Shown: piece after piece, positions 8,137 through 64,000 of the stretch
Numbering within the stretch: the stretch's first letter is position 1
Layout: every line of letters begins with the position of its first letter
The notes under the pieces: generated by a model
Told to the model about the DNA's origin: nothing
The model's input: the letters and a program-made list of their open reading frames with translations, nothing else
Database searches by the model: none
DNA from: Oikopleura dioica
Lineage: Eukaryota; Animalia; Chordata
DNA length: 64,000 nt
Direction of reading: 5' to 3'
Assembly: GCA_907165135.1 (NCBI GenBank)
Contig: OU015568.1
Location: forward strand, 3,038,001-3,102,000
Made by a program: the position numbers and the translations under genes

Positions 8137-8471
8137 GGACCCCCCCGTCAGCTTTTTTCGAAAAATCAAATTTCGGAATTTTAAAATTTTGACCACTGAA
8201 ATGGATTCTACGGGTGAAAAAACGATTTTGAGGCTTCATTTTTTGGGGGTCTATCTCGACTCTAACACCCTCAAAATCGCCTTTGAAAATTGGACTTTTC
8301 GCCAAAAATTGACGAATTTGCCCTAATTTTGGCTAAAATATTGATTTTTATTGGTCAAAAATTCCTCTTATCAAGTTTTTGACGCAAGCTTAACCAGAGG
8401 ACGGATTAAGAACCAAAAATATGGTGTTTTTAAAAATTTCCATTTTCGAAGAAAAGAGCTGACGGGGGTCC
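8137..8471. mobile_element. MITE with TTAA target-site duplication and GG termini (Kolobok-like end structure)
   Basis: TTAA|GGACCCCCCCGTCAGCT ... AGCTGACGGGGGTCC|TTAA, with imperfect extension to about 30 bp; AT-rich interior with no credible CDS. Confidence 0.8.
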
Positions 8472-8903: not shown

Positions 8904-9622
8904 ATGCGTGTTTTTGGCTTTTTGATTCTCTCAGGTACTTGATTTTCCTGAAAAATTTAAATAAAAGTCAAATTTAGGGTCTTGTCAAGACTATCAAAGC
9001 CGAAATTACGGCTCTTACCTAAGTCCAAGAGACGTCGGCGAAGAAACATTCGACATCTGCTCAAGATGGATTTACGATGCTCTTCGCTGCGAACCCCCAC
9101 GAGGAAAAACTTCGAAATACATTCATCGCTTTCAAAAAGTCATCGGCGACGCTCTCTGGCATGTTGAATCCACGTACAAATGCTCGGTCAATCGAGGTAG
9201 GCGAGAGGCAATTGACGTGTATTCAGGAGAATATGACGAGAAAAGTAATGAGTACGAGTACGAATATGAAGGCGATGCGGTTGTGGCAAGTGATGGGGAT
9301 ATAAGAAAGTTTGAAGCAAGATCGCAAATGGGCCTCGGGCGAGTGAGAAATGATGACCTAAGATCCCAGGTAGAGAACTTTAAGATTTTTGTCAACAGAC
9401 TATTAAACCTACCAGGACCTGAGGACCCTGATTCAAGCCTCTACACAGGTTTCCTCCCAGTTAGTTATACAAATTTAGTGCATCGAAAGTTTTGCCCGAT
9501 TCTATCAAAAAACTGACATCACCAGTTGCCGAAAAAAGTACGCCTGGAAAGCTCGAACCGACGGATTGACAAGACAAATAACAAAAATGATGTTCATCTG
9601 TATGAAATCAAACGGATATTGA
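8904..9622 (+). CDS. Small secreted Cys-containing protein, probably lineage-specific
   Basis: MRVFGFLILS| signal-like exon, GT-AG intron, then an open exon (CSRWIYDALRCEPPRGKTSKYIHRFQKVIGDALWH) and a plausible last exon CIESFARFYQKTDITSCRKKYAW...FICMKSNGY*. Confidence 0.6.
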
Positions 9623-14007: not shown

Positions 14008-17000
14008 AGAATAGAAAGGGTGGTTGGAAAGATAGGGTTGATTACAAATGGGGACTATTGGAAAGCGAATACTTGGTACTTGACGTTGGCTCTAGGGTCG
14101 GCTCTTGGAGCGGCCGCATTTCTTTCCTTTCTTGCTTATCTTTGCGGATGTTGGGAAGACGAAGACGGTATGATTTTTTATAATCAACGCTTCAATTACC
14201 CAAATTAAGATGAAGAACTATACAAGCCCCGTTTTTCCCGTCGATATTCATCAACAATCGTGTCCACTCCCGACTCTGCGACGCGCCGAAAAACTAACTC
14301 GTCGAACAATTTAAACTCCATTGTTCGAAGTCCGAGGGAGCCTTCATACAGTATTAAGAACAAAACTAATTTTACATTACCTCAAACAGGTAAAAAATAG
14401 GCTCAATCAATGTTCAGCGAGGACAGTTCAATCAGGGTTAAAACTACAGAAATTTAATACCTCTGCCTAGCGTTCCGTGTCTTCAAAGTACAAATCCCAG
14501 GAGATAAAATATTCAGAAACGGCAGTTAACGAAGTCAAACCTCAAACCTCCGTGAAAATAGCGAATGAAGTCTGTGATCCAACTTCAAAAAGTTCACAAG
14601 TTGCATCAATAATTACAGCAAATACTGATCAATCATCGATTCCGAAAGTTCAAGAACCAACACCAGATTCTGGGTAAGCGGTATCTTTAGGGGGTGAACG
14701 GTGAAAAAATTGATTTTTTTATCGTCCTCTAATAGAGATGAATAATATATCGATGGAAAGCCCTTCATCCACTGATCATTTTGACATATGACTTGAGGTC
14801 ATCAAAGGTCACGTGGGGTCAGCTGAGGTCAAAATCTGATTTTTCCTAAAGTCGACGTAACTAGGGTTTCTATGGATGATTTTGATTGCTGATAATCACT
14901 GATAATATTAATTTTTCCTAAATTTTTATCACGTGACATATTGGAGGACCCCGGAGGACCTAGATGATGGAAGAATTTAAGCAAATTAAATGAAAATTAA
15001 TCTCTTCCGGGGACTTCTTCGGCATGGTGATTAACCGAAACGTGAACATTGAAAAATCTGATAATTTGATCACGTGGACCCTCGAAGGACCCCTGATTGA
15101 AGAATTTATTTAAGAAAGAAGAGAAATCTATGTAAAAAGATAAAATAATTGATATTTCAAAAACCATAATTTAAAATCGGAAAGGACACACTGAAGTTAA
15201 TTGAAAAACGGGTGTGGGCGGGGTTTGGGAAAAAATGAGACTGATCATCTCTATCTTTTCTTCAAATCCCAGCCGTAATCAAGCCCATTTCAATTAAAAA
15301 GCCAGGGACGGGGCTGAGACGGCCCGAAGGGCCGTCAAGCCCATTTCAATTAAAAAGCCAGGGACGGGGCTGAGACGGCCCGAAGGGCCGTCAAGCCCAT
15401 TTCAATTAAAAAGCCAGGGACGGGGCTGAGACGGCCCGAAGGGCCGTCAAGCCCATTTCAATTAAAAAGCCAGGGACGGGGCTGAGACGGCCCGAAGGGC
15501 CGTCAAGCCCATTTCAATTAAAAGCCAGGGACGGGGCTGAGACGGCCCGAAGGGCCGTCAAGCCCATTTCAATTAAAAGCCAGGGACGGGGCTGAGACGG
15601 CCCGAAGGGCCGTCAAGCCCATTTCAATTAAAAGCCAGGGACGGGGCTGAGACGGCCCGAAGGGCCGTCAAGCCCATTTCAATTAAAAGCCAGGGACGGG
15701 GCTGAGACGGCCCGAAGGGCCGTCAAGCCCATTTCAATTAAAAGCCAGGGACGGGGCTGAGACGGCCCGAAGGGCCGTCAAGCCCATTTCAATTAAAAAG
15801 CCAGGGACGGGGCTGAGACGGCCCGAAGGGCCGTCAAGCCCATTTCAATTAAAAAGCCAGGGACGGGGCTGAGACGGCCCGAAGGGCCGTCAAGCCCATT
15901 TCAATTAAAAAGCCAGGGACGGGGCTGAGACGGCCCGAAGGGCCGTCAAGCCCATTTCAATTAAAAGCCAGGGACGGGGCTGAGACGGCCCGAAGGGCCG
16001 TCAAGCCCATTTCAATTAAAAGCCAGGGACGGGGCTGAGACGGCCCGAAGCCGTCAAGCCCATTTCAATTAAAAGCCAGGGACGGGGCTGAGACGGCCCG
16101 AAGGGCCGTCAAGCCCATTTCAATTAAAAGCCAGGGACGGGGCTGAGACGGCCCGAAGGGCCGTCAAGCCCATTTCAATTAAAAAGCCAGGGACGGGGCT
16201 GAGACGGCCCGAAGGGCCGTCAAGCCCATTTCAATTAAAAAGCCAGGGACGGGGCTGAGACGGCCCGAAGGGCCGTCAAGCCCATTTCAATTAAAAAGCC
16301 AGGGACGGGGCTGAGACGGCCCGAAGGGCCGTCAAGCCCATTTCAATTAAAAGCCAGGGACGGGGCTGAGACGGCCCGAAGGGCCGTCAAGCCCATTTCA
16401 ATTAAAAGCCAGGGACGGGGCTGAGACGGCCCGAAGGGCCGTCAAGCCCATTTCAATTAAAAAGCCAGGGACGGGGCTGAGACGGCCCGAAGGGCCGTCA
16501 AGCCCATTTCAATTAAAAGCCAGGGACGGGGCTGAGACGGCCCGAAGGGCCGTCAAGCCCATTTCAATTAAAAGCCAGGGACGGGGCTGAGACGGCCCGA
16601 AGGGCCGTCAAGCCCATTTCAATTAAAAGCCAGGGACGGGGCTGAGACGGCCCGAAGGGCCGTCAAGCCCATTTCAATTAAAAGCCAGGGACGGGGCTGA
16701 GACGGCCCGAAGGGCCGTCAAGCCCATTTCAATTAAAAAGCCAGGGACGGGGCTGAGACGGCCCGAAGGGCCGTCAAGCCCATTTCAATTAAAAAGCCAG
16801 GGACGGGGCTGAGACGGCCCGAAGGGCCGTCAAGCCCATTTCAATTAAAAAGCCAGGGACGGGGCTGAGACGGCCCGAAGGGCCGTCAAGCCCATTTCAA
16901 TTAAAAAGCCAGGGACGGGGCTGAGACGGCCTGACTGAAGTTGAATTATCAGTAGTCCAGCAATTGATTTCAAGCAAAAAAGTCCTCCGGAGGACTAATT

Positions 17001-17632
17001 ATGACTCAAACTCAGTCACGTGATCAAGTTTACGCAATTTTTCGACAATAATCGGAATGAAAAAAAAGTGTCATTGCCGGGATTCGAACACCCCTATAAG
17101 GCCAACTCACAGAGTTTGGACAAATAATTAGCTCTAGAATTTTTTGCACACAAGTGCACAAAGTGATTTTATAAGTTTCTGAAAGCATTTTTTCTGTAGA
17201 TTAAGAATATTTTTGATTTAGGCTTGAGGAAGGTTGAGATCAAAAGTTATCGTGAAAAAACTGTTATCTTCATGAGAAAATTGGCATTTATGATGGAAAA
17301 CAACGTTGTATTAATTTACAATTATTGAATTAAATGTTTTTTATGATGCGTTTTATACGTATTCATCGATTCAAATTAGTTTTTTAAACTTTGAATTTTG
17401 CTCAATTTTTCACTGTTCACCCCCTAGGTATCTTTCATAAAAAAAGAAGCCTTTGCTCAGCAACCCTAATTTCAGGGAGAATCCTCCAAAGCGACAACGC
17501 CCAAGTTTTAAAGCAGTGGCTCAAAAGATAGCGCATGAAAAAGCACTAGAAAAGCTCCGCGATCCAAATCAGAAAAATGACTCGTTGGTCCAAACGATGA
17601 AGGCCATCAGAACGCTTAATAGAATGAGTTGA
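14008..17632 (+). CDS. Single-pass membrane protein with Ser/Thr-rich tail; last intron carries the 2.7-kb array element; start unresolved
   Basis: TM segment WYLTLALGSALGAAAFLSFLAYLCGCW. The exon ending TCT GG|gtaagc (14673) joins in phase to tttgctcag|C AAC CCT (17461), which stays open for about 56 codons to TGA 17632. Confidence 0.5.
15214..15251 (+). promoter_or_regulatory. Array leader motif 1 (GC box plus TGAGA.TGATCA.CTC)
   Basis: GTGGGCGGGGTTTGGG...TGAGACTGATCATCTC; homologous to 60030-60068, upstream of array 2. Confidence 0.45.
15280..16931 (+). repeat. Tandem array 1: about 30 copies of a 55-56 bp unit with a perfect hairpin core
   Basis: Unit CAAGCCCATTTCAATTAAAA(A)GCCAGGGACGGGGCTGAGACGGCCCGAAGGGCCGT. 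Units differ almost only in A4/A5; one unit near 16050 has a GG deletion. Confidence 0.99.
17060..17100 (-). other. tRNA-like 3' fragment (B box followed by an oligo-T run) inside the TIR element
   Basis: Minus strand GTTCGAATCCCGGCAATGACAC followed by T8; no A box or cloverleaf upstream. Confidence 0.35.
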
Positions 17633-24324: not shown

Positions 24325-25093
24325 ATCAGTTCATCCTTTTTCTTCCAAAGGCCTTCTCTTTTTTCTCTATTATTTGTCTAGTAGAGTCTCGATGATCTTT
24401 TATTTTTTTTCACAGCCGTAATCGCTGATTGCTCTTGGGCCGTTTTTGAAGTTGTAAAAATTGCTTTGAGCTTGGTGCTTTGATCGAAGTTGTAATTCGA
24501 ATTTACTACCAGGTCCCGGCGACACGAGGGATCCATTGTTTTCACAAAAAGCTAGCTAGCGGAAAATAGCAAGAATTCTAGCGCAAAGGAAGGGACTGAG
24601 GGTACAATTAAGAGATTACATCAATTATTTATGCCTCCATTCAACCTTACAATTATATAAAAAAAAATCAAAAATACGAAAGTTGAAAGTTGCAAAAAGC
24701 AAAAAAGCCGGTTGCGGCTTATTAGACCTAGGAATTAGACAGTATCTCTAAGAAGTTGTAACTAATTTTTTTATTAATCTTAAAAGCCGCAAGCGGCTCT
24801 TTCATAAGTAAATTCTTTTATAAGGCTATTTTAAGGAGGCATAAATAAGGAATATTCTTTAATTTTCGGACGTATAATTTATTTGTTTATCAAACATGTC
24901 GATCAAACAAGAATTGAACATTTTTTGAACAAGGGAATAGAAGGTACAAATGACTCTTCCATCGCCTTTTTTAACAAAATAAGACGATGGAAGGGAAATT
25001 TTTTAATAAATAAGTTCGACGAGCGGCATGTTGAGGTGGAATTGATGATCCTACTCTTGTTATTGTTGAATTGGGGGCTTGAAGGGAGGGTCC

Positions 25094-33967: not shown

Positions 33968-36402
33968 TGAAATTTTCAAGGCCAAGCCCCTGGATTGCGG
34001 TCGTTCCCTGGATTCCGGAAGAGGCTGTTAAAATAGTATCTTTGCGCAAAAGAAAAAACAGGGATTTTCAGGCCAAATGCGTTTTCGGCTGTTTGAGTTA
34101 TTGTTTTGGATGAAACAAGAAGAATATAACGTCAATCTTGGCCACTTGAAATCGTGTGAAAAGGGCTCAAAATCAAAGCGGTCTTACTTATCTTACGTGA
34201 TTACCAAAACCCTTTTTTATTTACTCTATTTAGCAAATTAATTCGAAAACACGTTTCGCCCCTCTCAGCGGTCCTATCACGTGGTTTTTAAAAGAACAAC
34301 TCTGAACAATAAATTTTCATCTGGCATTTTCGCAACTGTTCAAATTTTATGACAAAACGTGAAAACGAAATCAAAACCGTGTTGAGACGGTTAATTTTGC
34401 GTTTTTAGTCTACCAGGCTGATAAGAACCGCCACTTGATATAATTTTCATGATTCACAATTTGAGTTCAAATCCAATTTTTCAAGTCAAACAAGAATTCT
34501 CGTTTTCGTAACCGTCACTTTTGCAATTTCAAAGTCAATTTTCTTTAAAAAAGAAAAATCTTTTTCGGAAACCTGTGTGAAATCCTGAGTCAGGGTCATA
34601 AAAATTAAAGTTCAAAATCTCTTCGATCAATTTTCAAGAGCCTATAGTTGAAATTGTACCGCCCTTTCACCCCCTCTTTTTGATAAGATAGACGTAATCA
34701 AGCCCATTTTTCATACCAATTTACTAAACCACATGTTTATCGCCGTTTTTGTGAACGTATTGAGTTCCTCTTTTTTAGAACGACGCTAGCAAAAAGTGAT
34801 AGCTTACGTAACACGCAATAGATCTTCCTAAAGAATATGTCTGTTTTCTTGTCACGTGTTGACCAGCGTTTTTTTTTGGCAGAAAGAACATTCCGACAAT
34901 GCTTCCGACGGAAGCATTATCGGGATTACGACCAGAGTCGGATTTGTCACATTCAAAATGTTGGATTTTGGAAGGATCAACTTCCTGTGAAAAAAGGTCC
35001 TCTCCTTCGCGCCTGGAATGCGTCTTATTACCCAGTTCACTCAAACTCCTCGCCCTCGACTGTTACGTTGCCGATTTCCAACGATCTTTTAGTGGGCCAT
35101 TCATTTTTCCGGAATTGTCGCTTCGAGGGCCCGTAGAAGTAGAACCCGCATAGCATCACCTTCTACCTGTCTCAGGACACTTGTCGTTTTTGTCTTCGCG
35201 TCTTATTATATAAAATATTATAAAATTGTCAAGACGGAAATTCACAGCACTTGAGGGATTACTAATCCCGGATCACGTTTTTTGGGCATACCGGAAAAGT
35301 TCAGACATGAGCACTATTGATGAATAGAAGGTCTCTTTTTTAGATTCATTTCGACAAAAAAGGGGTTTTTTTTTAATTTATTTTATTTCAAAGATTGTCG
35401 ACTATATTGATTGCAGGGAAAACGTACTAGTAGTAGGTCATTTTATTCATAATAGTAAACAGTAAAATAATTTTTACGAAAATAATCAAAAGTTATTCAA
35501 TATTTTCACGCTATCAACATTCATCTCGAGTATTTTCGCTTCATTTTGTCCAATTCGTGGTCAAGATTCTCAATGATTTCATATTTTTCGTTTTTATTTT
35601 TGAATTTTTTTCCTCATTTTTGTCAAAAAATTATCTCAACTTCATTTCGGAATTAACAGAATCCGAATGAGCAGCAGAAACTGACCCAGAAATTCAAAAC
35701 GCCGGGCAAGAACAAACTGAGAAGTTGAGCAAATACAGTCTCTTAGACTCGCCATTGTGCGAGAATTTCCAAAATGTCTAGTTTCGATTGCATAATCGAC
35801 CAAATTGTGCCTCCCAAAAACCGCGAATTGCCATGTGAACAGCAGTCAAGGTGAAAGTTTTCTTATCCCCTTCTTACTGACCAAAAATCACTGTAGCCAC
35901 GAAAGTTTCGTTAGAAAAATTTCTAAAAGTCGCCTTAAATTTGCCCAAAAATGGTGAGATAATATTTGATGCTTTTGGCAGCCGCGAAATAAGCCGTATT
36001 CTGGCCGCATTCAGCGATTGAAAAGATAACACAATTAAAAAAAGAGTCAAGCTTAGATTATGTGTTTGCTGGAGAAATATTTTCGCGTCATCCTCTCAAC
36101 GTGCACCTGGGCGCGATATCATCCCACTTATAAAGACAATTCAAATAAGGGCACGCCCGGTTCCACTCATTTCGTCCGAGAATAGCCAAGCTGTGTAAAC
36201 TATTGAATTAGAATACTTTTTAGCGTCACAAGTTTTGAATCATAAGCATTTTTTGTTCAAGTTTACAGTAGCTCAGATCATTAAACGAGACACTTGTCAG
36301 TTGAAAATTTAGTGTTCAATAATGGTCGTAAAATCTCTTTTATTTATATGTTTTCGAACACGAGCGTATAATTTTACGTTCAAATTTGACAATTGTCAGA
36401 GG

Positions 36403-37339: not shown

Positions 37340-38492
37340 TAACCACGCTTTATCCTAATTTCCTGACTTTCGAATCGACTTATCCATTGTTTCCCTAATA
37401 AAAAAAGATTCTGAGAGAAATGACGGACCTTATGAAAAAGTGTTGAAATCTTGTGGGAGCTCGGGAATTTCGTGCTTTTCTTTGGGTGGGTTGAGAAGAA
37501 CGCGAATTGCTGCAACGTTGGAGCGGAAACTCGCCGCATTATTCATCGTGTGGTTATTCGCTGGGCTCTTCAATCGCCAAAACAGCGTTCTTTGTGTGCG
37601 AGATTCGCTTTTTTTCCGCATAAAATTAATAATTGCTCGAGTACTTTTTCACTGAATATTTCGCCCTTGTTTATCCCGCTCTAGAATTCCTGAATTGATC
37701 GTTTTTCTCAAAAATGCGCGGAGGAAAATAAAAACGTTCTTCGAAAAAGCAAAAAAAAAAATTGAAACAACACGATCGTGGACTCGAAATCGAGTGCTTC
37801 AAACACGTAAAATTACGGGAAAGAGGTGATTGTTATGCACGGTACTTATTGACTTCGTTCAATTGTGTGACTTGAGAGTGAGGCTTGATTGTTCAAATTC
37901 GTCACTGCTTTGGACGAGCTGGAAGTGCTGGACTTGACGAAAATATTGAATATTTACGGCTGCCTCTTGAAATCCTTTCTGGGGCGGAGGGAGGTCCTTA
38001 ATTTTGCGATGCATAAATGTTTAGCGATTTCGACCCTACTAGACAGGAAGAAGGGGGTTCTCTAAGAAAGAGATGACTATAAGTGATTTTTGCCGTAATA
38101 ATATACGAGCTCATTTTTATAATTTTGCAAAAATTGAAAAAAAAATTGGAAATTTGTCCCAGAATAACCCCTTGAAATATTATTTGTAGCGTTCTAAATT
38201 TATTTAGAAACAGCAAATCAAGTCCCGGGTGTTGAGAAACGCGTAAAATAGCCCCATCTGGGCGCTTTTGTATATTCAACGTTGAAATTTCATATTCATC
38301 GCGATGATGTGGTTAGCCAGTTCTGCTTCCGCCCGTGAGACGATATCGCCAGCCACTTAGAAGCACAGCTGGCCTAGAATCACGACAAGTCAGTGGAGCG
38401 TTTTCACTTTCAATCGGCAAGTCTAGACTATCTTTTGAAAACATAATTGCAATTCCAGTCAAAAAAATGTTCATCAAAATTTTGAGAACCGA

Positions 38493-38581
38493 GAAGCCGC
38501 TTGCAGCTTCGAGTAAAAATGAATTAAGCCGCGCTTTGCGCGGCTATTTGTTCCTTATTACTCGAAGCCGCAAGCGGCTTC
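38493..38581. repeat. Cluster of three AGCCGC-n-GCGGCT palindromes (dispersed family)
   Basis: GAAGCCGCTTGCAGCTTC, AGCCGCGCTTTGCGCGGCT and GAAGCCGCAAGCGGCTTC; further copies at 24705, 24785, 27267 and 40072. Confidence 0.75.
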
Positions 38582-40528
38582 TCGATTATTAAAAATGAAA
38601 AAATGATTGAGCAGATGCTAAAAATAAGCATTTGTCGACTCAAGAATTCGAAAAGAAAAACGTAAGTAGTAACAAGTGTGAAAAATTGGATCGACGACCG
38701 GATAAGAAAATGTTAGTTTTAGTGATAAGTTGCGCTGCTACCAATTGAAGGTATTACGTGGGGGTTCTTTTTTGACCGACTTTAGCAACTTTCAATATTG
38801 AAAATTTTAGAACTTGAATGTTTTTCTGCAAGTTTTGCGTCACAGACAGAGAGCGATTATAAACTTTAGATTTTCCGCTTTATAAATCGTACTAAGCATC
38901 GCAAAGCAATTAACAGATAAGAGCGGATCAAAATGACGAAGTGCGTCTAAGAGAAAATGTTCAACAAGGATATGCGTTCTGACTGTTATTAAGCTTTTTA
39001 CAGTCAGAAAGATTTAATTATTTGAAGCTAAAAAGCTCTGACTTTATAATTGAGAAGGAAAATAACAGCTCATAATAGAATTCTAGAGCGAAAACGAAGC
39101 TGAGAAATTCGTCGGATCCCAGCATATGATTATCGCGGGAGAAAAATCGAGCAGGAATTGCATTTTGGTGGAACTCTAATGCAACTTGCTCGAGCCTAAC
39201 GAGCTTCTGAGCGTGGGTCCATTTAAACTGCTCACTAAGCATAATTACTCTGTTTGTTTCTCCTGTTCGACAGGCAAGAGGACAGTTTATTTCACAATTG
39301 TTTATAATTACTCACAAAGAAACGGCTGCAGTAACTAGCGAGACAGACAAAATTGAAAATTTCCCGTTTCATCATTTTTTTGGAGAGTTCGTTTCTTCGT
39401 TAGAAGCACTTCCGAGTCGGAACGAACCTGTTCCAAAAGAAAATGATCGAACTGAAAATGAAAAATTCCAAGCTGAAGGCTCCACTTATCGTTCATCAAA
39501 AAATTTTCTCGCAGAGGAGGAGTTTTTGATAGAACTCAACCTTATGCAAGACTGCAAAAAAGGGGCCCGAACCCTAACCCTAACCTATCAAAACTCAAGA
39601 AGCCTGACTCAACAACTGGTATTTCAAGAAAAAAAATGCAAAACTATTCATTTTTCTATCCGTTTATGGTCAATTTTTCCCACCCGAAGAGCCAGTCCAA
39701 AAGCTATCTGATGACCCGTAAATTTCTTCGGTGTTTTTTGGAACGCGCGATAGAAATCTACCTCGCGATCCGTTCTTATCCGCGTGAACCTTGGCGCATT
39801 GATTAATAAATTAGCCGCGCCCGCAAAGAAGGGCTTTCAAAGGAAAATGTTAAATATTTTTCAAGAAAACAACACGTTGGCAAACCAAAAAATTTTGAGA
39901 AAAATAATCTTTCGGGTTCAATATCAAAGCCATTTTTCAAAATAGCCGGATCTCTTGGTGGAAAACCTGTGTAGAAACCTGAGTCAGGGTTCTAAAAGAG
40001 CTCTTATCAATAAATTCGTAGCAGCTTGTCTAAGAAAGTACCTTTTTTAACTAGATTTTCTTAATTCTTGGGAAGCCGCTGCGCGGCTTCTTTATAAAAA
40101 AAAACCACAATAAGAATCCTTTATAAATAAATCCTTTCAAAAATGTAAAATCAATCCTTTTTCAAATTGTATGAGTCAGCCGATTTCGTAAGATACCTAT
40201 CTCACCCCTTCTTCTCCGCGCTGGAAAATCATGAGTACTCCGATTGTGCGCGGCGCGCGCTGTAGCGCCATCGCGCAAATTTTCCGCGACCAACGGCGCT
40301 ATGTGTTTTCATGGGGAAACTATATAAGCTTTTCTTGTGATAAGGCAAAATAGACCTTCTCGATCTTTTTCGTATTTCAGCGCTGATTCTTGAGTCAAAA
40401 TCGTCAAAAGCAAATTTTATTTTTTGAAAAAAGAGAAATATTCACAGCTTCCATCAAATTTGGGATCTTCATCACTGTAAGCCAAATCGTGTTAAAAAAA
40501 GAAGAGAAAAAAATTTTCAGGAAATAAA

Positions 40529-58687: not shown

Positions 58688-59285
58688 AGTTGTTATTGGC
58701 TCAAAATTGCAAAAAAACGCATAAGTCGACCGGTGCAACTTTCCTAAATGGTGAGCACTACTTGGTCGATGCGCTCGGAAATTTGATGAGAGTGAGACTA
58801 GGGATCGAACGCAAATCATCACCGGGGAACCCAAAAAATTTTCTTCTGAGCTTATGAATGAAAAAATAGGTTTTGTGATGCAGGCTTTTCAAATATGAAA
58901 TTCAAATTTTTATAGTTATCGTAGTTTTTGAGTTATCACGCTTTGAAAATTAAAGAGAGAAGAAGAAAAGAGCCAATTAGAAGCGCGCAGCGCGGCGAAG
59001 CGTCACGCAAAGGGTGGCGCTCCGGGGCGAGAAGCTTTTGCCGCGACGCGTTTCGAGTTTTCACTGCGAGCGAGCCAGCGCTCTCACCAATAGAAAATTG
59101 TAAAAAGAAATTCACAGCGTGATTCGAACGCACGCGACCAGGGAGACCCAATCCTACCAAATGCCAACTGGGCCACTTGCTTTTGAGTGGATCGTTCATT
59201 TTGAATAGATAAATTTAGGCTACTTAGGTCAAGTCCAATTTAGAAGACTTGAACTGGTAAATGTCAGAGTAACCTAACCCTTCCA

Positions 59286-59340
59286 TCAGCTTTTTTCGAA
59301 AAATAAAATTTCGGAATTTAAAAATTTTGACCCCGGAAAT
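59286..59340 (+). repeat. Second copy of the subterminal sequence of the 8137 MITE family
   Basis: TCAGCTTTTTTCGAAAAAT(a/c)AAATTTCGGAATTT(a/t)AAAATTTTGACC..GAAAT is 51/55 identical to 8148-8202. Confidence 0.8.
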
Positions 59341-60029
59341 CGATTGGCCGGAAAAAATATAAATTTTCGGCCTTCGAACAGCCATAACTCACGTGATACT
59401 CTTTGAAACCAGATGATCCAAGTATCAATGGAAAGCTCAGATTCTGAGGATTGGGGGAAAGCAAAAATTTTTCCGAAAAATCGGTTTTTGCTGATTGCTG
59501 AAAATATTAATTTTCGTCATTCAGAATCGATTTTTTTCAAATTTCTTTTCTTTCCCCCAATTCTTAGAAGCTGAGCTTTCTAAAAATATATCAATCACGT
59601 GATTTCATCATCTGCCACGTGAGATATGGCAGTTCGTAGAAAATTCATGAAAATGGCCTCAGAATCGCCCCAGGCGATGAAAAAAGGTTTTTTCCAGGTG
59701 TTTTCTAGAGTTTAGACGATGACAAAAACGGTCAAGATAATGATTTATCCCCAAGATGAAATTTTTGTCAAAATTGAAAATTTATATTTTTTCCGACCAT
59801 TCTACATGGCTAGGACTGCCACATAAAAAATCGGCGATAGTAAGCCTCACAGAAATCGATTTTTCTAACCCTGCCACCGATAAGAGTTTGCTCTAAGCTC
59901 TTAAAAAAAGGTTTGTAAAAGGGTGTAAAAATCGATTTATAATCATTTTTTTCGGATTATTTGAAAATTCAATAAAAACCATAACAGAGCTTGAAATTGG
60001 GCTTATATTGATTTTTACATCAGATGGAG

Positions 60030-60068
60030 GTGGGCGGGGTTGGGGACGGAACTGAGAATGATCAACTC
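60030..60068 (+). promoter_or_regulatory. Array leader motif 2 (GC box plus TGAGA.TGATCA.CTC)
   Basis: GTGGGCGGGGTTGGGG...TGAGAATGATCAACTC; homologous to 15214-15251. Confidence 0.45.
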
Positions 60069-60086
60069 AGATTTCCCGGCCTTTGT

Positions 60087-61949
60087 CAAGCCCCTTAAAT
60101 TTAAAAATCATGGAACGGGGCTGAGACGGCCCGAAGGGCCGTCAAGCCCCTTAAATTTAAAAATCATGGAACGGGGCTGAGACGGCCCGAAGGGCCGTCA
60201 AGCCCCTTAAATTTAAAAATCATGGAACGGGGCTGAGACGGCCCGAAGGGCCGTCAAGCCCTTAAATTTAAAAATCATGGAACGGGGCTGAGACGGCCCG
60301 AAGGGCCGTCAAGCCCTTAAATTTAAAAATCATGGAACGGGGCTGAGACGGCCCGAAGGGCCGTCAAGCCCTTAAATTTAAAAATCATGGAACGGGGCTG
60401 AGACGGCCCGAAGGGCCGTCAAGCCCTTAAATTTAAAAATCATGGAACGGGGCTGAGACGGCCCGAAGGGCCGTCAAGCCCCTTAAATTTAAAAATCATG
60501 GAACGGGGCTGAGACGGCCCGAAGGGCCGTCAAGCCCCTTAAATTTAAAAATCATGGAACGGGGCTGAGACGGCCCGAAGGGCCGTCAAGCCCTTAAATT
60601 TAAAAATCATGGAACGGGGCTGAGACGGCCCGAAGGGCCGTCAAGCCCTTAAATTTAAAATCATGGAACGGGGCTGAGACGGCCCGAAGGGCCGTAAGCC
60701 CCTTAAATTTAAAAATCATGGAACGGGGCTGAGACGGCCCGAAGGGCCGTCAAGCCCCTAAAATTTAAAAATCATGGAACGGGGCTGAGACGGCCCGAAG
60801 GGCCGTCAAGCCCCTTAAATTTAAAAATCATGGAACGGGGCTGAGACGGCCCGAAGGGCCGTCAAGCCCTTAAATTTAAAAATCATGGAACGGGGCTGAG
60901 ACGGCCCGAAGGGCCGTCAAGCCCCTTAAATTTAAAAATCATGGAACGGGGCTGAGACGGCCCGAAGGGCCGTCAAGCCCCTTAAATTTAAAAATCATGG
61001 AACGGGGCTGAGACGGCCCGAAGGGCCGTCAAGCCCCTTAAATTTAAAAATCATGGAACGGGGCTGAGACGGCCCGAAGGGCCGTCAAGCCCCTTAAATT
61101 TAAAAATCATGGAACGGGGCTGAGACGGCCCGAAGGGCCGTCAAGCCCTTAAATTTAAAAATCATGGAACGGGGCTGAGACGGCCCGAAGGGCCGTCAAG
61201 CCCTTAAATTTAAAAATCATGGAACGGGGCTGAGACGGCCCGAAGGGCCGTCAAGCCCTTAAATTTAAAAATCATGGAACGGGGCTGAGACGGCCCGAAG
61301 GGCCGTCAAGCCCCTTAAATTTAAAAATCATGGAACGGGGCTGAGACGGCCCGAAGGGCCGTCAAGCCCCTTAAATTTAAAATCATGGAACGGGGCTGAG
61401 ACGGCCCGAAGGGCCGTAAGCCCCTTAAATTTAAAAATCATGGAACGGGGCTGAGACGGCCCGAAGGGCCGTCAAGCCCCTAAAATTTAAAAATCATGGA
61501 ACGGGGCTGAGACGGCCCGAAGGGCCGTCAAGCCCCTTAAATTTAAAAATCATGGAACGGGGCTGAGACGGCCCGAAGGGCCGTCAAGCCCTTAAATTTA
61601 AAAATCATGGAACGGGGCTGAGACGGCCCGAAGGGCCGTCAAGCCCCTTAAATTTAAAAATCATGGAACGGGGCTGAGACGGCCCGAAGGGCCGTCAAGC
61701 CCTTAAATTTAAAAATCATGGAACGGGGCTGAGACGGCCCGAAGGGCCGTCAAGCCCCTTAAATTTAAAAATCATGGAACGGGGCTGAGACGGCCCGAAG
61801 GGCCGTCAAGCCCTTAAATTTAAAAATCATGGAACGGGGCTGAGACGGCCCGAAGGGCCGTCAAGCCCCTTAAATTTAAAAATCATGGAACGGGGCTGAG
61901 ACGGCCCGAAGGGCCGTCAAGCCCCTTAAATTTTAAAATCATGGAACGG
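60087..61949 (+). repeat. Tandem array 2: about 33 copies of a 55-56 bp unit with the same hairpin core as array 1
   Basis: Unit CAAGCCC(C)TTAAATTTAAAAATCATGGAACGGGGCTGAGACGGCCCGAAGGGCCGT; units differ mostly in C3/C4. Confidence 0.99.
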
Positions 61950-62657
61950 AAAATACTAGGCCCCCGCCAAAAACACCTCCTGACGTAGCAGCACGAGCAA
62001 TTTTTTGACTCAACCCAGCTTCTTTTTTGGGTGTCCCAAACGATCGGGTCCGGGAGTCTCAAGTTAAGTTTTTAAAAAAATAGCTGGGGACAGCCTTAAA
62101 AATAAATAAACCATTAACCATGCCAGATCTAGACTCAGAAAATTGCCAATAAGTGTGAATCTGCGGGACAAATTCGTAAAAACCGTGGGTTTTGGAGGTG
62201 GTTCAATCATGTCAGCTTAGGGGCCTAAGCTAGCTAGACTAGCTAAGCTGAGGGCATAAAAAATTTCTCCTAAGCTTGCTAAGTTGTGAGCTAACCAGAT
62301 TTAGAACTCTGCCTGAGGTGCATGTGTTGTTTTCGCTATGCACCTCAGCAGGTGCATGCAGTTACTCTCAAAAAAAGCCAAGTACCTGGAGTGGTCGAAA
62401 TCCAATATAAAGAACCCTTAAACTCAAAGGCACTTCGGTAAAAGCCAACTTTTGCCTCAGGAGGTGTACCCTGGCGGGGTAAGGTTAATGAATAAGCGAA
62501 TGGCAAGATAGGGAGCTGATTCTACCAGTTCATTTGAAAACGAGCTTTCAAATAAGCGCTTGATCAGCCTTTTACCAATATAAAGTAGATACGAGTTAAA
62601 GTTCGGGAAATGGGGGGATCCCTGTAATTTAATAATCATCGAACGAGACTCTTCCAT

Positions 62658-62735
62658 GTGTACATAGCCTAGTGGTCAATAGATGGGTCAGGGTCTAATC
62701 GGTGCGGCGGGTTCGAATCCCGGCGCTCAACTTTT
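62658..62735 (+). pseudogene. Degenerate tRNA or tRNA-derived SINE head
   Basis: A box TAGCCTAGTGG, B box GGTTCGAATCCC and a T run after it, but the acceptor stem pairs poorly and no anticodon arm is assignable. Confidence 0.45.
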
Positions 62736-64000
62736 GATTTTTTCGTGCGGCTCTCTCTAGCGCCTTCGCGCATTGACGCGGGCTATGCGCTTTTGCCGCC
62801 GCTTTATGAGTCATTCTTCAGAAGTACAAAAAGGCAAGCGCAAGTACGCGTTGCCGATTTTGAGTGTTTTCTTTACAGAAAACTCTTTTTAATCCATAAT
62901 ACATCTACTGTTAGCAACGCGTGATTGCGCGTCAACAGGAAGGCTGTTTTTCGACAGTATCCGGAGAACCGGAAGTGATAAAGGAATTTCATTAAGTAAT
63001 TTGAAATCAGCATGTCCGAATTACTATTCAAAATTTTAATATAAGAGACATATCAGTATTTTAAAAAATGGCTGTTTTGATTTGCGTTCGATCCCTAAGT
63101 GAGACAAGCGAATGATGATTCGATTTTCATACCAAATAGACATCAGAGAATGTAAGCAAGTTTTCGTTTAATCCATTTTATGCACTCATTAGAGGATTCT
63201 TCGTGTTTCACTATGGGTCATCTATTGGAACACATCATATAGAGATTCGTCTGAAAGAGAAAGACACCAAGACGTTTCCAGTCGTCGTGATTTGAAACGG
63301 GTCTTAAGTTTAGAGTCTAAACTTTAGACCGTCTAAACACGCTCTTTGAAAATAATACCCATTTTCTTGAGTTACTTTAAGGATATAGCCGTTCTCAAGG
63401 CACTTTTGTAGCGCCGAAATGGGACGATAAAATTTTTTCATTTCAAGACAGTTCCTACCTAAAATCGTCTGTAGAATTCAAATCTGATGTTTTTCAAAAT
63501 TTTTTTTCAGGAAAATTTCTCTCTAGAGCGATTTGAAATCTTACGATCACTTTTTCTCGAAAATTTTCCATTAAATCGCTAAAACTAAACCGTGTATTAT
63601 AATAAGAAACTATCAATCTAGCTTCTTAGGGCTTCAAAATTTCAAAACTCGACCAAATTTATATTCTAGCGCCTTCTTCTATTCAATCTCTTCTTCTTTC
63701 TCGTTGATGATTCGCTCGCGCGCGACCAATCAGCGCAAAACAGCCCGCCATGATTCTCAAGAAGACCCGACCCTCAACCTCAATCATTTTCCATCTGATT
63801 CATATTCCACTGTAGTATCTTTCCTTCGGCCAATAAACAAACTTTCGGAAAATCCGACGAATGATTGAAGAACAGACAAATTGTCTTGATTCTTTCTTGA
63901 ATAAAAGCTTGTCAATCTGATACTTTCACTCAGTATTGAGAAACAATGAGTACTAAAAGCAGTGTTGCAAATTTTTCAATATCATAAGCATGGCAAAGAA

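Follow-up and report, generated by a model that had tools for sequence, protein, structure and literature searches.

Two hairpin arrays with nearly uniform units

The 64-kb stretch of Oikopleura dioica DNA analyzed here (the window) holds two tandem arrays built on a GC-rich hairpin, and the locus raises the question of what this repeat is, how it came to be spread, and which part of it is kept. In a preliminary description, made from the letters of the window, it was proposed that an invariant 33-nt core was repeated at a fixed 56-bp period, that the linker between cores was replaced from locus to locus, and that the core was therefore constrained. The two arrays were readily found again:

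15279-16931, + strand: array 1, 29.8 copies, period 56 (Tandem Repeats Finder)
60085-61949, + strand: array 2, 33.6 copies, period 56 (Tandem Repeats Finder)

Uniformity within each array was 98-99%. The 33-nt core was identical in both majority units and the linkers differed at 8 of 23 positions, as had been described; the accompanying chance figure of 3.5e-4 was arithmetically correct, and the predicted fold of the core was also reproduced (DNA z about -5.2). Array 1 is made of about 30 units of 55 or 56 bp, each with a GC hairpin, a C-GAA-G loop, and a T/A-tract linker, and it stops at a mid-hairpin point. The period itself was less regular than had been claimed: units of 56 bp numbered 14 out of 29 in array 1 and 16 out of 32 in array 2, and the remaining units in both arrays were 53-55 bp long. 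About half of the units per array were 55 bp, through single-base differences in homopolymers, and a few units carried core deletions. Given that the linkers of the two arrays aligned without a gap and were identical at 15 of 23 positions, they are diverged homologues rather than replacements. The reading of the opposite strand as a cUUCGg tetraloop was dropped, as the fold predicted there is a UUC triloop on a perfect stem. A CRISPR-like repeat-spacer array was likewise rejected, the spacers being not unique and the linkers near-identical within each array.

Three rare unit variants recurred together in array 2 at a lag of 13 units (60616-60780 and 61337-61502), with P about 0.002 under a post hoc recoding in which the C3/C4 run was ignored. 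Before this recoding, a higher-order test was swamped by homopolymer noise and did not reach significance, and array 1 showed no testable higher-order pattern. From the 13-unit recurrence, array 2 therefore grew at least once by duplication of a block of about 720 bp. Elsewhere in the window, AT-rich flanks hold dispersed short hairpins of another family, unlike the array unit (AGCCGC..GCGGCT, at 24785, 27267, 38480-38594, and 40072), and another short interspersed repeat was present in three copies (9422-9459, 34524-34603, and 39919-39997).

Each array lies inside a non-autonomous hAT-type transposon

The window was scanned for inverted ends (TIRs) of at least 10 bp flanked by a direct duplication (TSD) of at least 6 bp. 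Exactly two such pairs were found, delimiting the elements E1 and E2, and one array was located inside each; these enclosing transposons had escaped the preliminary description. The features of the two elements are as follows:

14688-17426, strand not assigned: E1, non-autonomous hAT-type DNA transposon, 2739 bp (TIR/TSD scan)
14680-14687, + strand: left TSD of E1, 8 bp, GGTATCTT; right copy at 17427-17434
14688-14708, + strand: left TIR of E1, beginning TAGGGGGTGAAC, 20/21 match to the right end
17406-17426, - strand: right TIR of E1, 20/21 match to the left end
58799-63097, strand not assigned: E2, non-autonomous hAT-type transposon, 4299 bp (TIR/TSD scan)
58799-58818 and 63078-63097: TIRs of E2, perfect over 20 bp, TAGGGATCGAAC
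58791-58798, + strand: left TSD of E2, 8 bp, AGTGAGAC; right copy at 63098-63105
62665-62719, + strand: tRNA-like A-box/B-box unit resembling a type 2 Pol III promoter, with a T run after it, right arm of E2
59121-59175, - strand: second A-box/B-box unit, in inverted orientation in the left arm of E2; 64% identity with the first

The TSD of E1 is 8 bp when T14688 is taken as the start of the TIR. E1 sits within a 40-nt GT-AG intron (14674-14687 plus 17435-17460), and its computed empty site gave back this intron together with an open frame. When E2 was removed in silico, a continuous reading frame was left, which suggests insertion in a coding exon; E2 thus apparently splits such an exon. A Pfam search with the two host-gene fragments returned no match. 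A transposase-sized ORF was found in neither element: ORFs of at least 120 aa were absent from E1, and none above 87 aa was present in E2. The left end of E1 was present at other places, in that six contigs with other flanks diverged from the window sequence exactly at 14688, and in sequencing run X2 depth was about 290 in the flank and 2000-2800 at the left end of E1 (up to about 7-10x). E1 is therefore a multi-copy family with interspersed copies in different flanks.

Both A-box/B-box units of E2 point outward, each before a T run, and no such unit with a T run arose in 200 base-shuffled windows. Neither ARAGORN (no tRNA) nor Rfam called them; they may possibly be Pol III promoters, TFIIIC sites, or echoes of a motif in the TIR. 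Several further observations were made in the elements. E1 contains a B-box-like motif with a T run at 17081-17089 (- strand). E2 contains an imperfect inverted repeat with 115-nt arms (59372-59639), and an 88% match links its segment 59277-59345 to 8139-8207; small elements may be nested here. The window has four TCACGTGA E-box palindromes (14929, 17016, 59389, and 59595), and all fall inside E1 or E2, where 0.6 were expected. The motif GGGGATCC occurs within about 700 bp of an array at four loci (window 62614, L002:586, L015:564, and L016:319), and in E2 it precedes an isolated, diverged linker of the array type (62620-62650).

One leader and array in at least three transposon shells

On its upstream side, each array is joined to a leader:

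15160-15280, + strand: leader 1, comprising AAAACCATAA, then the GC-box-like GTGGGCGGGG (15214), a TGATCA palindrome (15242), and the array junction
59975-60087, + strand: leader 2; identity to leader 1 is 61% over the full length and 73% between the GC box and the junction

E1 and E2 had in common only the array, this leader (about 120 bp), and a short stretch resembling a B box. When the leaders of E1, E2, and contigs L010 and L018 were aligned, 48 columns were invariant, compared with a mean of 9 and a maximum of 16 after shuffling. The array was inverted relative to the leader in L010 and L018. On L018, a marine metagenome contig, the enclosing shell is a complete, Ac-like miniature element of 883 bp (L018:465-1348, or 1530-2412 on the reverse strand) with CAGGGATGTAAA TIRs, an 8-bp TSD (ATCGGACT), and GCGAA subterminal repeats, and it apparently interrupts an ORF. 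E1, E2, and the L018 element all have an 8-bp TSD and short TIRs with a (C/T)AGGG start, as seen in TAGGGGGTGAAC, TAGGGATCGAAC, and CAGGGATGTAAA; in E1 and E2 this start is TAGGG. The cassette of leader and array therefore sits in at least three hAT-type shells. The cassette has no sharp edge on its upstream side, which falls in AT-rich DNA; the outer boundaries are of the TIR/TSD type. Homogeneous, enclosed in non-autonomous elements, and found at many loci, the arrays have the character of a transposon-borne satellite-like repeat.

Abundance and variation in the genome

Three DNA runs and one RNA run were aligned to positions 14300-15343, which contain a single unit. The summed depth over the core exceeded 1e6; this value is inflated by overlapping contigs and is not a copy number, and it is read only as indicating that the genome holds hundreds to thousands of units. 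Nine variant joints were recovered with many different linkers, eight of them with a period of 55 or 56 bp. The core was not invariant even in the Okinawan lineage, given that 15318 G>A accounted for about a quarter to a third of the summed contig depth in the three DNA runs. Arrays are homogeneous within elements and different between them.

It is scarcely credible that the arrays are assembly or read artefacts. The assembly is Nanopore-based and many 1-bp homopolymer differences separate the units, but the core, the tandem joints, and the leader-array junction were all present in contigs of three independent DNA runs and in metagenomes. These contigs largely refute an artefact; exact copy numbers and some of the 55/56 variation may still be wrong.

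Variants probably from another lineage and the conserved part of the unit

RNA run X13, which carries the same species label and derives from a poly(A) library, yielded 42 matches in 6.7 million unstranded records. All 42 reads were less than 90% alike and split evenly between strands, and none lay on the flanking exon. The variant unit of X13 has the same inner hairpin, and its loose-end consensus implies a 56-bp period. A metagenome search for dimers, in which periods of 49-63 bp were tolerated, identified seven AT-rich marine contigs carrying an X13-like variant, all at 56 bp; two of the seven, L015 and L032, represent one locus. The other 27 dimer matches were judged unrelated from their flanks and spacing. 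Six related metagenome contigs (L003, L004, L007, L009, L014, and L026) carry an unrelated 50-51-bp tandem repeat that has a purine-rich linker and the same CGGCCCGAAGGGCCG hairpin. The exact 28-nt Okinawan core had no match in metagenome or viral contigs; dimer, 19-nt hairpin, and leader patterns retrieved unrelated repeats, lone hairpins, or nothing from viral contigs, and the leader plus unit pattern had no match in a phage collection. Because the seven contigs match the X13 reads, contigs and reads alike are probably from another O. dioica lineage. The Okinawa lineage split off about 25 My ago (PMC11067885), and the window itself carries at 380-1561 a sulfatase gene whose product is 100% identical to a protein of O. 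dioica OKI2018_I69, PAR scaffold; the window maps to about 3.04-3.10 Mb of OU015568.1.

Seven arrays could be aligned without a gap, and one long block stood out:

15319-15335, + strand: inner 17-nt hairpin ACGGCCCGAAGGGCCGT (first full copy), the sole long block invariant in the seven aligned arrays

The seven inner base pairs and the GAA loop were invariant across all seven arrays, where the inner 15 nt had served as the search pattern for five of the seven alignment rows and the X13 reads had been picked by overall likeness. The pair next to this invariant stem is G-C in Okinawa and A-T elsewhere (one event), and the five pairs of the outer stem are not all formed in the non-Okinawan variants, where GGGCT can pair upstream instead. 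Beyond the inner 15-mer, the core was 47-59% identical between Okinawan and metagenome variants, and linker identity to the metagenome variant was 71-79% for E1 and 54-63% for E2. The outer core is thus conserved no better than the linker, and the proposed opposition of an invariant core and a replaced linker therefore fails. Support for the proposed constraint is partial and narrower, limited to the inner 17-nt hairpin and the 55-56-bp period, both of which persist in the variant probably of another lineage, together with the one G-C to A-T double change. Leader identity was 58-68% from one lineage-like variant to another. At fourfold sites, the sulfatase gene was 42% identical to a non-Okinawan orthologue (about 1.1 substitutions per site), a neutral baseline of one gene from a lineage that may differ from that of the contigs. 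From these comparisons, the inner hairpin, the period, the T/A-tract frame, and the leader look conserved above neutral; horizontal transfer of the elements could mimic such constraint.

How the cassette may have spread

We favor, with moderate confidence, the explanation that the satellite-like cassette is internal cargo of several unrelated non-autonomous hAT-type transposons of O. dioica. The surrounding element would be moved by cut-and-paste through a hAT transposase acting in trans, and the array inside each element would grow and be homogenized by block duplication through slippage or unequal exchange. Transfer between element families, sometimes inverted with respect to the leader, could occur by template switching during repair of excision gaps, a process that has been proposed as the origin of Ds filler DNA (PMC3260210). 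GNA mini-hairpins are stable DNA folds (PMC13037366), and the inner C-GAA-G hairpin, if very stable in DNA made single-stranded by replication or repair, would favor slippage and the re-amplification of units that keep it. Persistence of the hairpin might then reflect selection on the repeat itself and no host function, which is the weakest step of this scheme. The gapless 56-bp period and a leader 58-68% identical, compared with 42% at fourfold sites, count against a purely passive passenger.

Those same two features, a fixed period and a conserved leader, would better fit an unlikely, though by no means negligible, alternative in which leader and array form a functional cis-module that benefits the elements as a multivalent binding or chromatin platform, such that families capturing it spread better. 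Anti-silencing, nucleosome phasing, and a germline enhancer are among the roles that could be proposed, with a reader that might be a host or a transposon-encoded protein. The period of 55-56 bp in eight of nine Okinawan variants and of 56 bp in all seven metagenome contigs would agree with such a module, as would the GC-box-like motif and palindrome kept in the leader, the confinement of all four TCACGTGA sites and both A-box/B-box units of the window to E1 or E2, the presence of the cassette in three different shells, and the precedent of tandem VANC target motifs in VANDAL elements (PMC5735166). However, the array can be inverted relative to the leader, the 17-nt GC-box leader pattern was found in only two of the seven metagenome contigs (several of them cut by contig ends), phasing is loose with about half of the units per array at 55 bp, and VANC targets diverge fast between families whereas the present cassette is shared. 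A bolder form appears distinctly doubtful: unrelated hAT families would capture an exchangeable cis-module, some 25 My old and kept by selection, because a protein reads extruded C-GAA-G hairpins at fixed spacing, for anti-silencing or replication priming.

Other readings assign the hairpin a more direct part in amplification. We regard as quite improbable a nested rolling-circle element of non-autonomous Helitron/Helentron type, or the hairpin as a nicking signal that amplifies the unit, as the preliminary description had suggested. The GC-rich hairpin with its GNA loop and the leader-side junction, fixed in E1 and E2, would suit such an element, and central tandem repeats are typical of HINE/DINE-1 (PMC4067079) and the oyster CgHINE. 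Nevertheless, E1, E2, L002, L015, and L018 share no distal end, subTIR pair, or 3' stem-loop; the arrays differ in phase at their distal ends; growth through a block of 13 units does not resemble monomer rolling; the ORFs of E1 and E2 are short; and every defined boundary is hAT-type. The nicking role, like the others raised in the preliminary description, found no support in these results, and no Rep/HUH gene or Helitron-type end was found. HINE/Helentron membership was rejected, since subterminal inverted repeats and a 3' stem-loop are not shared among E1, E2, and the metagenome loci, as was a Helitron, for which a 5' TC and a 3' hairpin followed by CTRR, or a Rep/helicase gene, would be expected, given the lack of a long ORF and a CTAG that occurs only after array 2, about 40 nt past the last hairpin. 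Very improbable, too, is that an element-encoded primase takes the hairpins as single-strand signals for priming or replication, by which array-bearing elements would be replicated or locally amplified; a CCGAAGG mini-hairpin belongs to ssiA, the priming site of primase RepB' (PMC13037366), but such hairpins are common and occur also in unrelated GC-rich contigs and phage contigs. The stable predicted RNA fold and the one compensatory pair would agree with action of the unit as a ribozyme or structured RNA, of the kind seen in satellites with hammerheads, a role we consider highly improbable. No Rfam family scored above noise (searches of E1 and of the arms of E2 gave sub-threshold noise only), the hammerhead CUGANGA/GAAA core was absent by inspection, the outer stems are unlike between lineages, and just 42 of 6.7 million RNA records matched, evenly on both strands, in a poly(A) library probably of another lineage. 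The RNA structural role raised in the preliminary description accordingly found no backing in the Rfam searches or in these unstranded reads.

Relation to known systems and significance

The shells themselves have close counterparts. Ac/Ds elements have a C/TAGGGATGAAA TIR, an 8-bp TSD, and filler DNA (PMC3260210). Maize Ds2 and Ds-l4 (PMC3260210) resemble the present elements in their short C/TAGGG-type TIRs, 8-bp TSD, lack of a transposase, and internal sequence unrelated to the ends; the TIR of the L018 element resembles that of Ac, and subterminal repeats are present in it. Unlike in Ds elements, the filler consists of a leader and a long, homogeneous array of hairpins, common to families with different TIRs and apparently also to different lineages.

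That tandem repeats are borne by non-autonomous DNA transposons is well known (PMC9659126). The short dispersed arrays of Xenopus Xmix/Xstir and miDNA4, Drosophila Tetris, and bivalve Pearl/HindIII are likewise spread inside transposons (PMC9659126). In the review's listing, however, each belongs to a single element family and often arose from the TIR or interior, whereas the present cassette occupies at least three hAT shells, is invertible, and keeps its period and hairpin. HINE/DINE-1 elements (PMC4067079; oyster CgHINE) similarly show a conserved block followed by central tandem repeats, as well as palindromic motifs; in contrast, the elements described here have no subTIRs or 3' stem-loop end, and their outer boundaries are TIRs with an 8-bp TSD, where a Helentron would insert in TT with no target duplication. 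The VANC arrays of Arabidopsis VANDAL elements (PMC5735166), targets of an element-encoded protein that relieves silencing, are also non-coding tandem arrays in DNA transposons that grow by slippage or unequal crossing-over, but VANC motifs are 8-9 bp long and family-specific. Finally, the GCGAAGC mini-hairpins of RSF1010 ssiA and of phages G4 and N4 (PMC13037366) have the same C-GAA-G loop on a GC stem; those hairpins serve replicons that are single-stranded and have a primase or polymerase of their own, whereas here the hairpin is multimerized in chromosomal DNA.

No description of the present repeat family was found in the literature searched. The general phenomenon, tandem repeats in non-autonomous transposons, is already known; what is new is that the cassette probably persists across lineages, that a third shell, Ac-like, carries it, that the array can be inverted, and that the part kept is narrowed to 17 nt. 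The genome of O. dioica is marked by extreme rearrangement and microhomology-based repair (PMC11067885), and this abundant repeat family provides it with a dispersed source of hairpins and homology. It also offers a clear case of a single satellite cassette moving between transposon families. If the conserved hairpin, period, and leader serve the elements, non-autonomous transposons would share an accessory module in this cassette, something new for animals.
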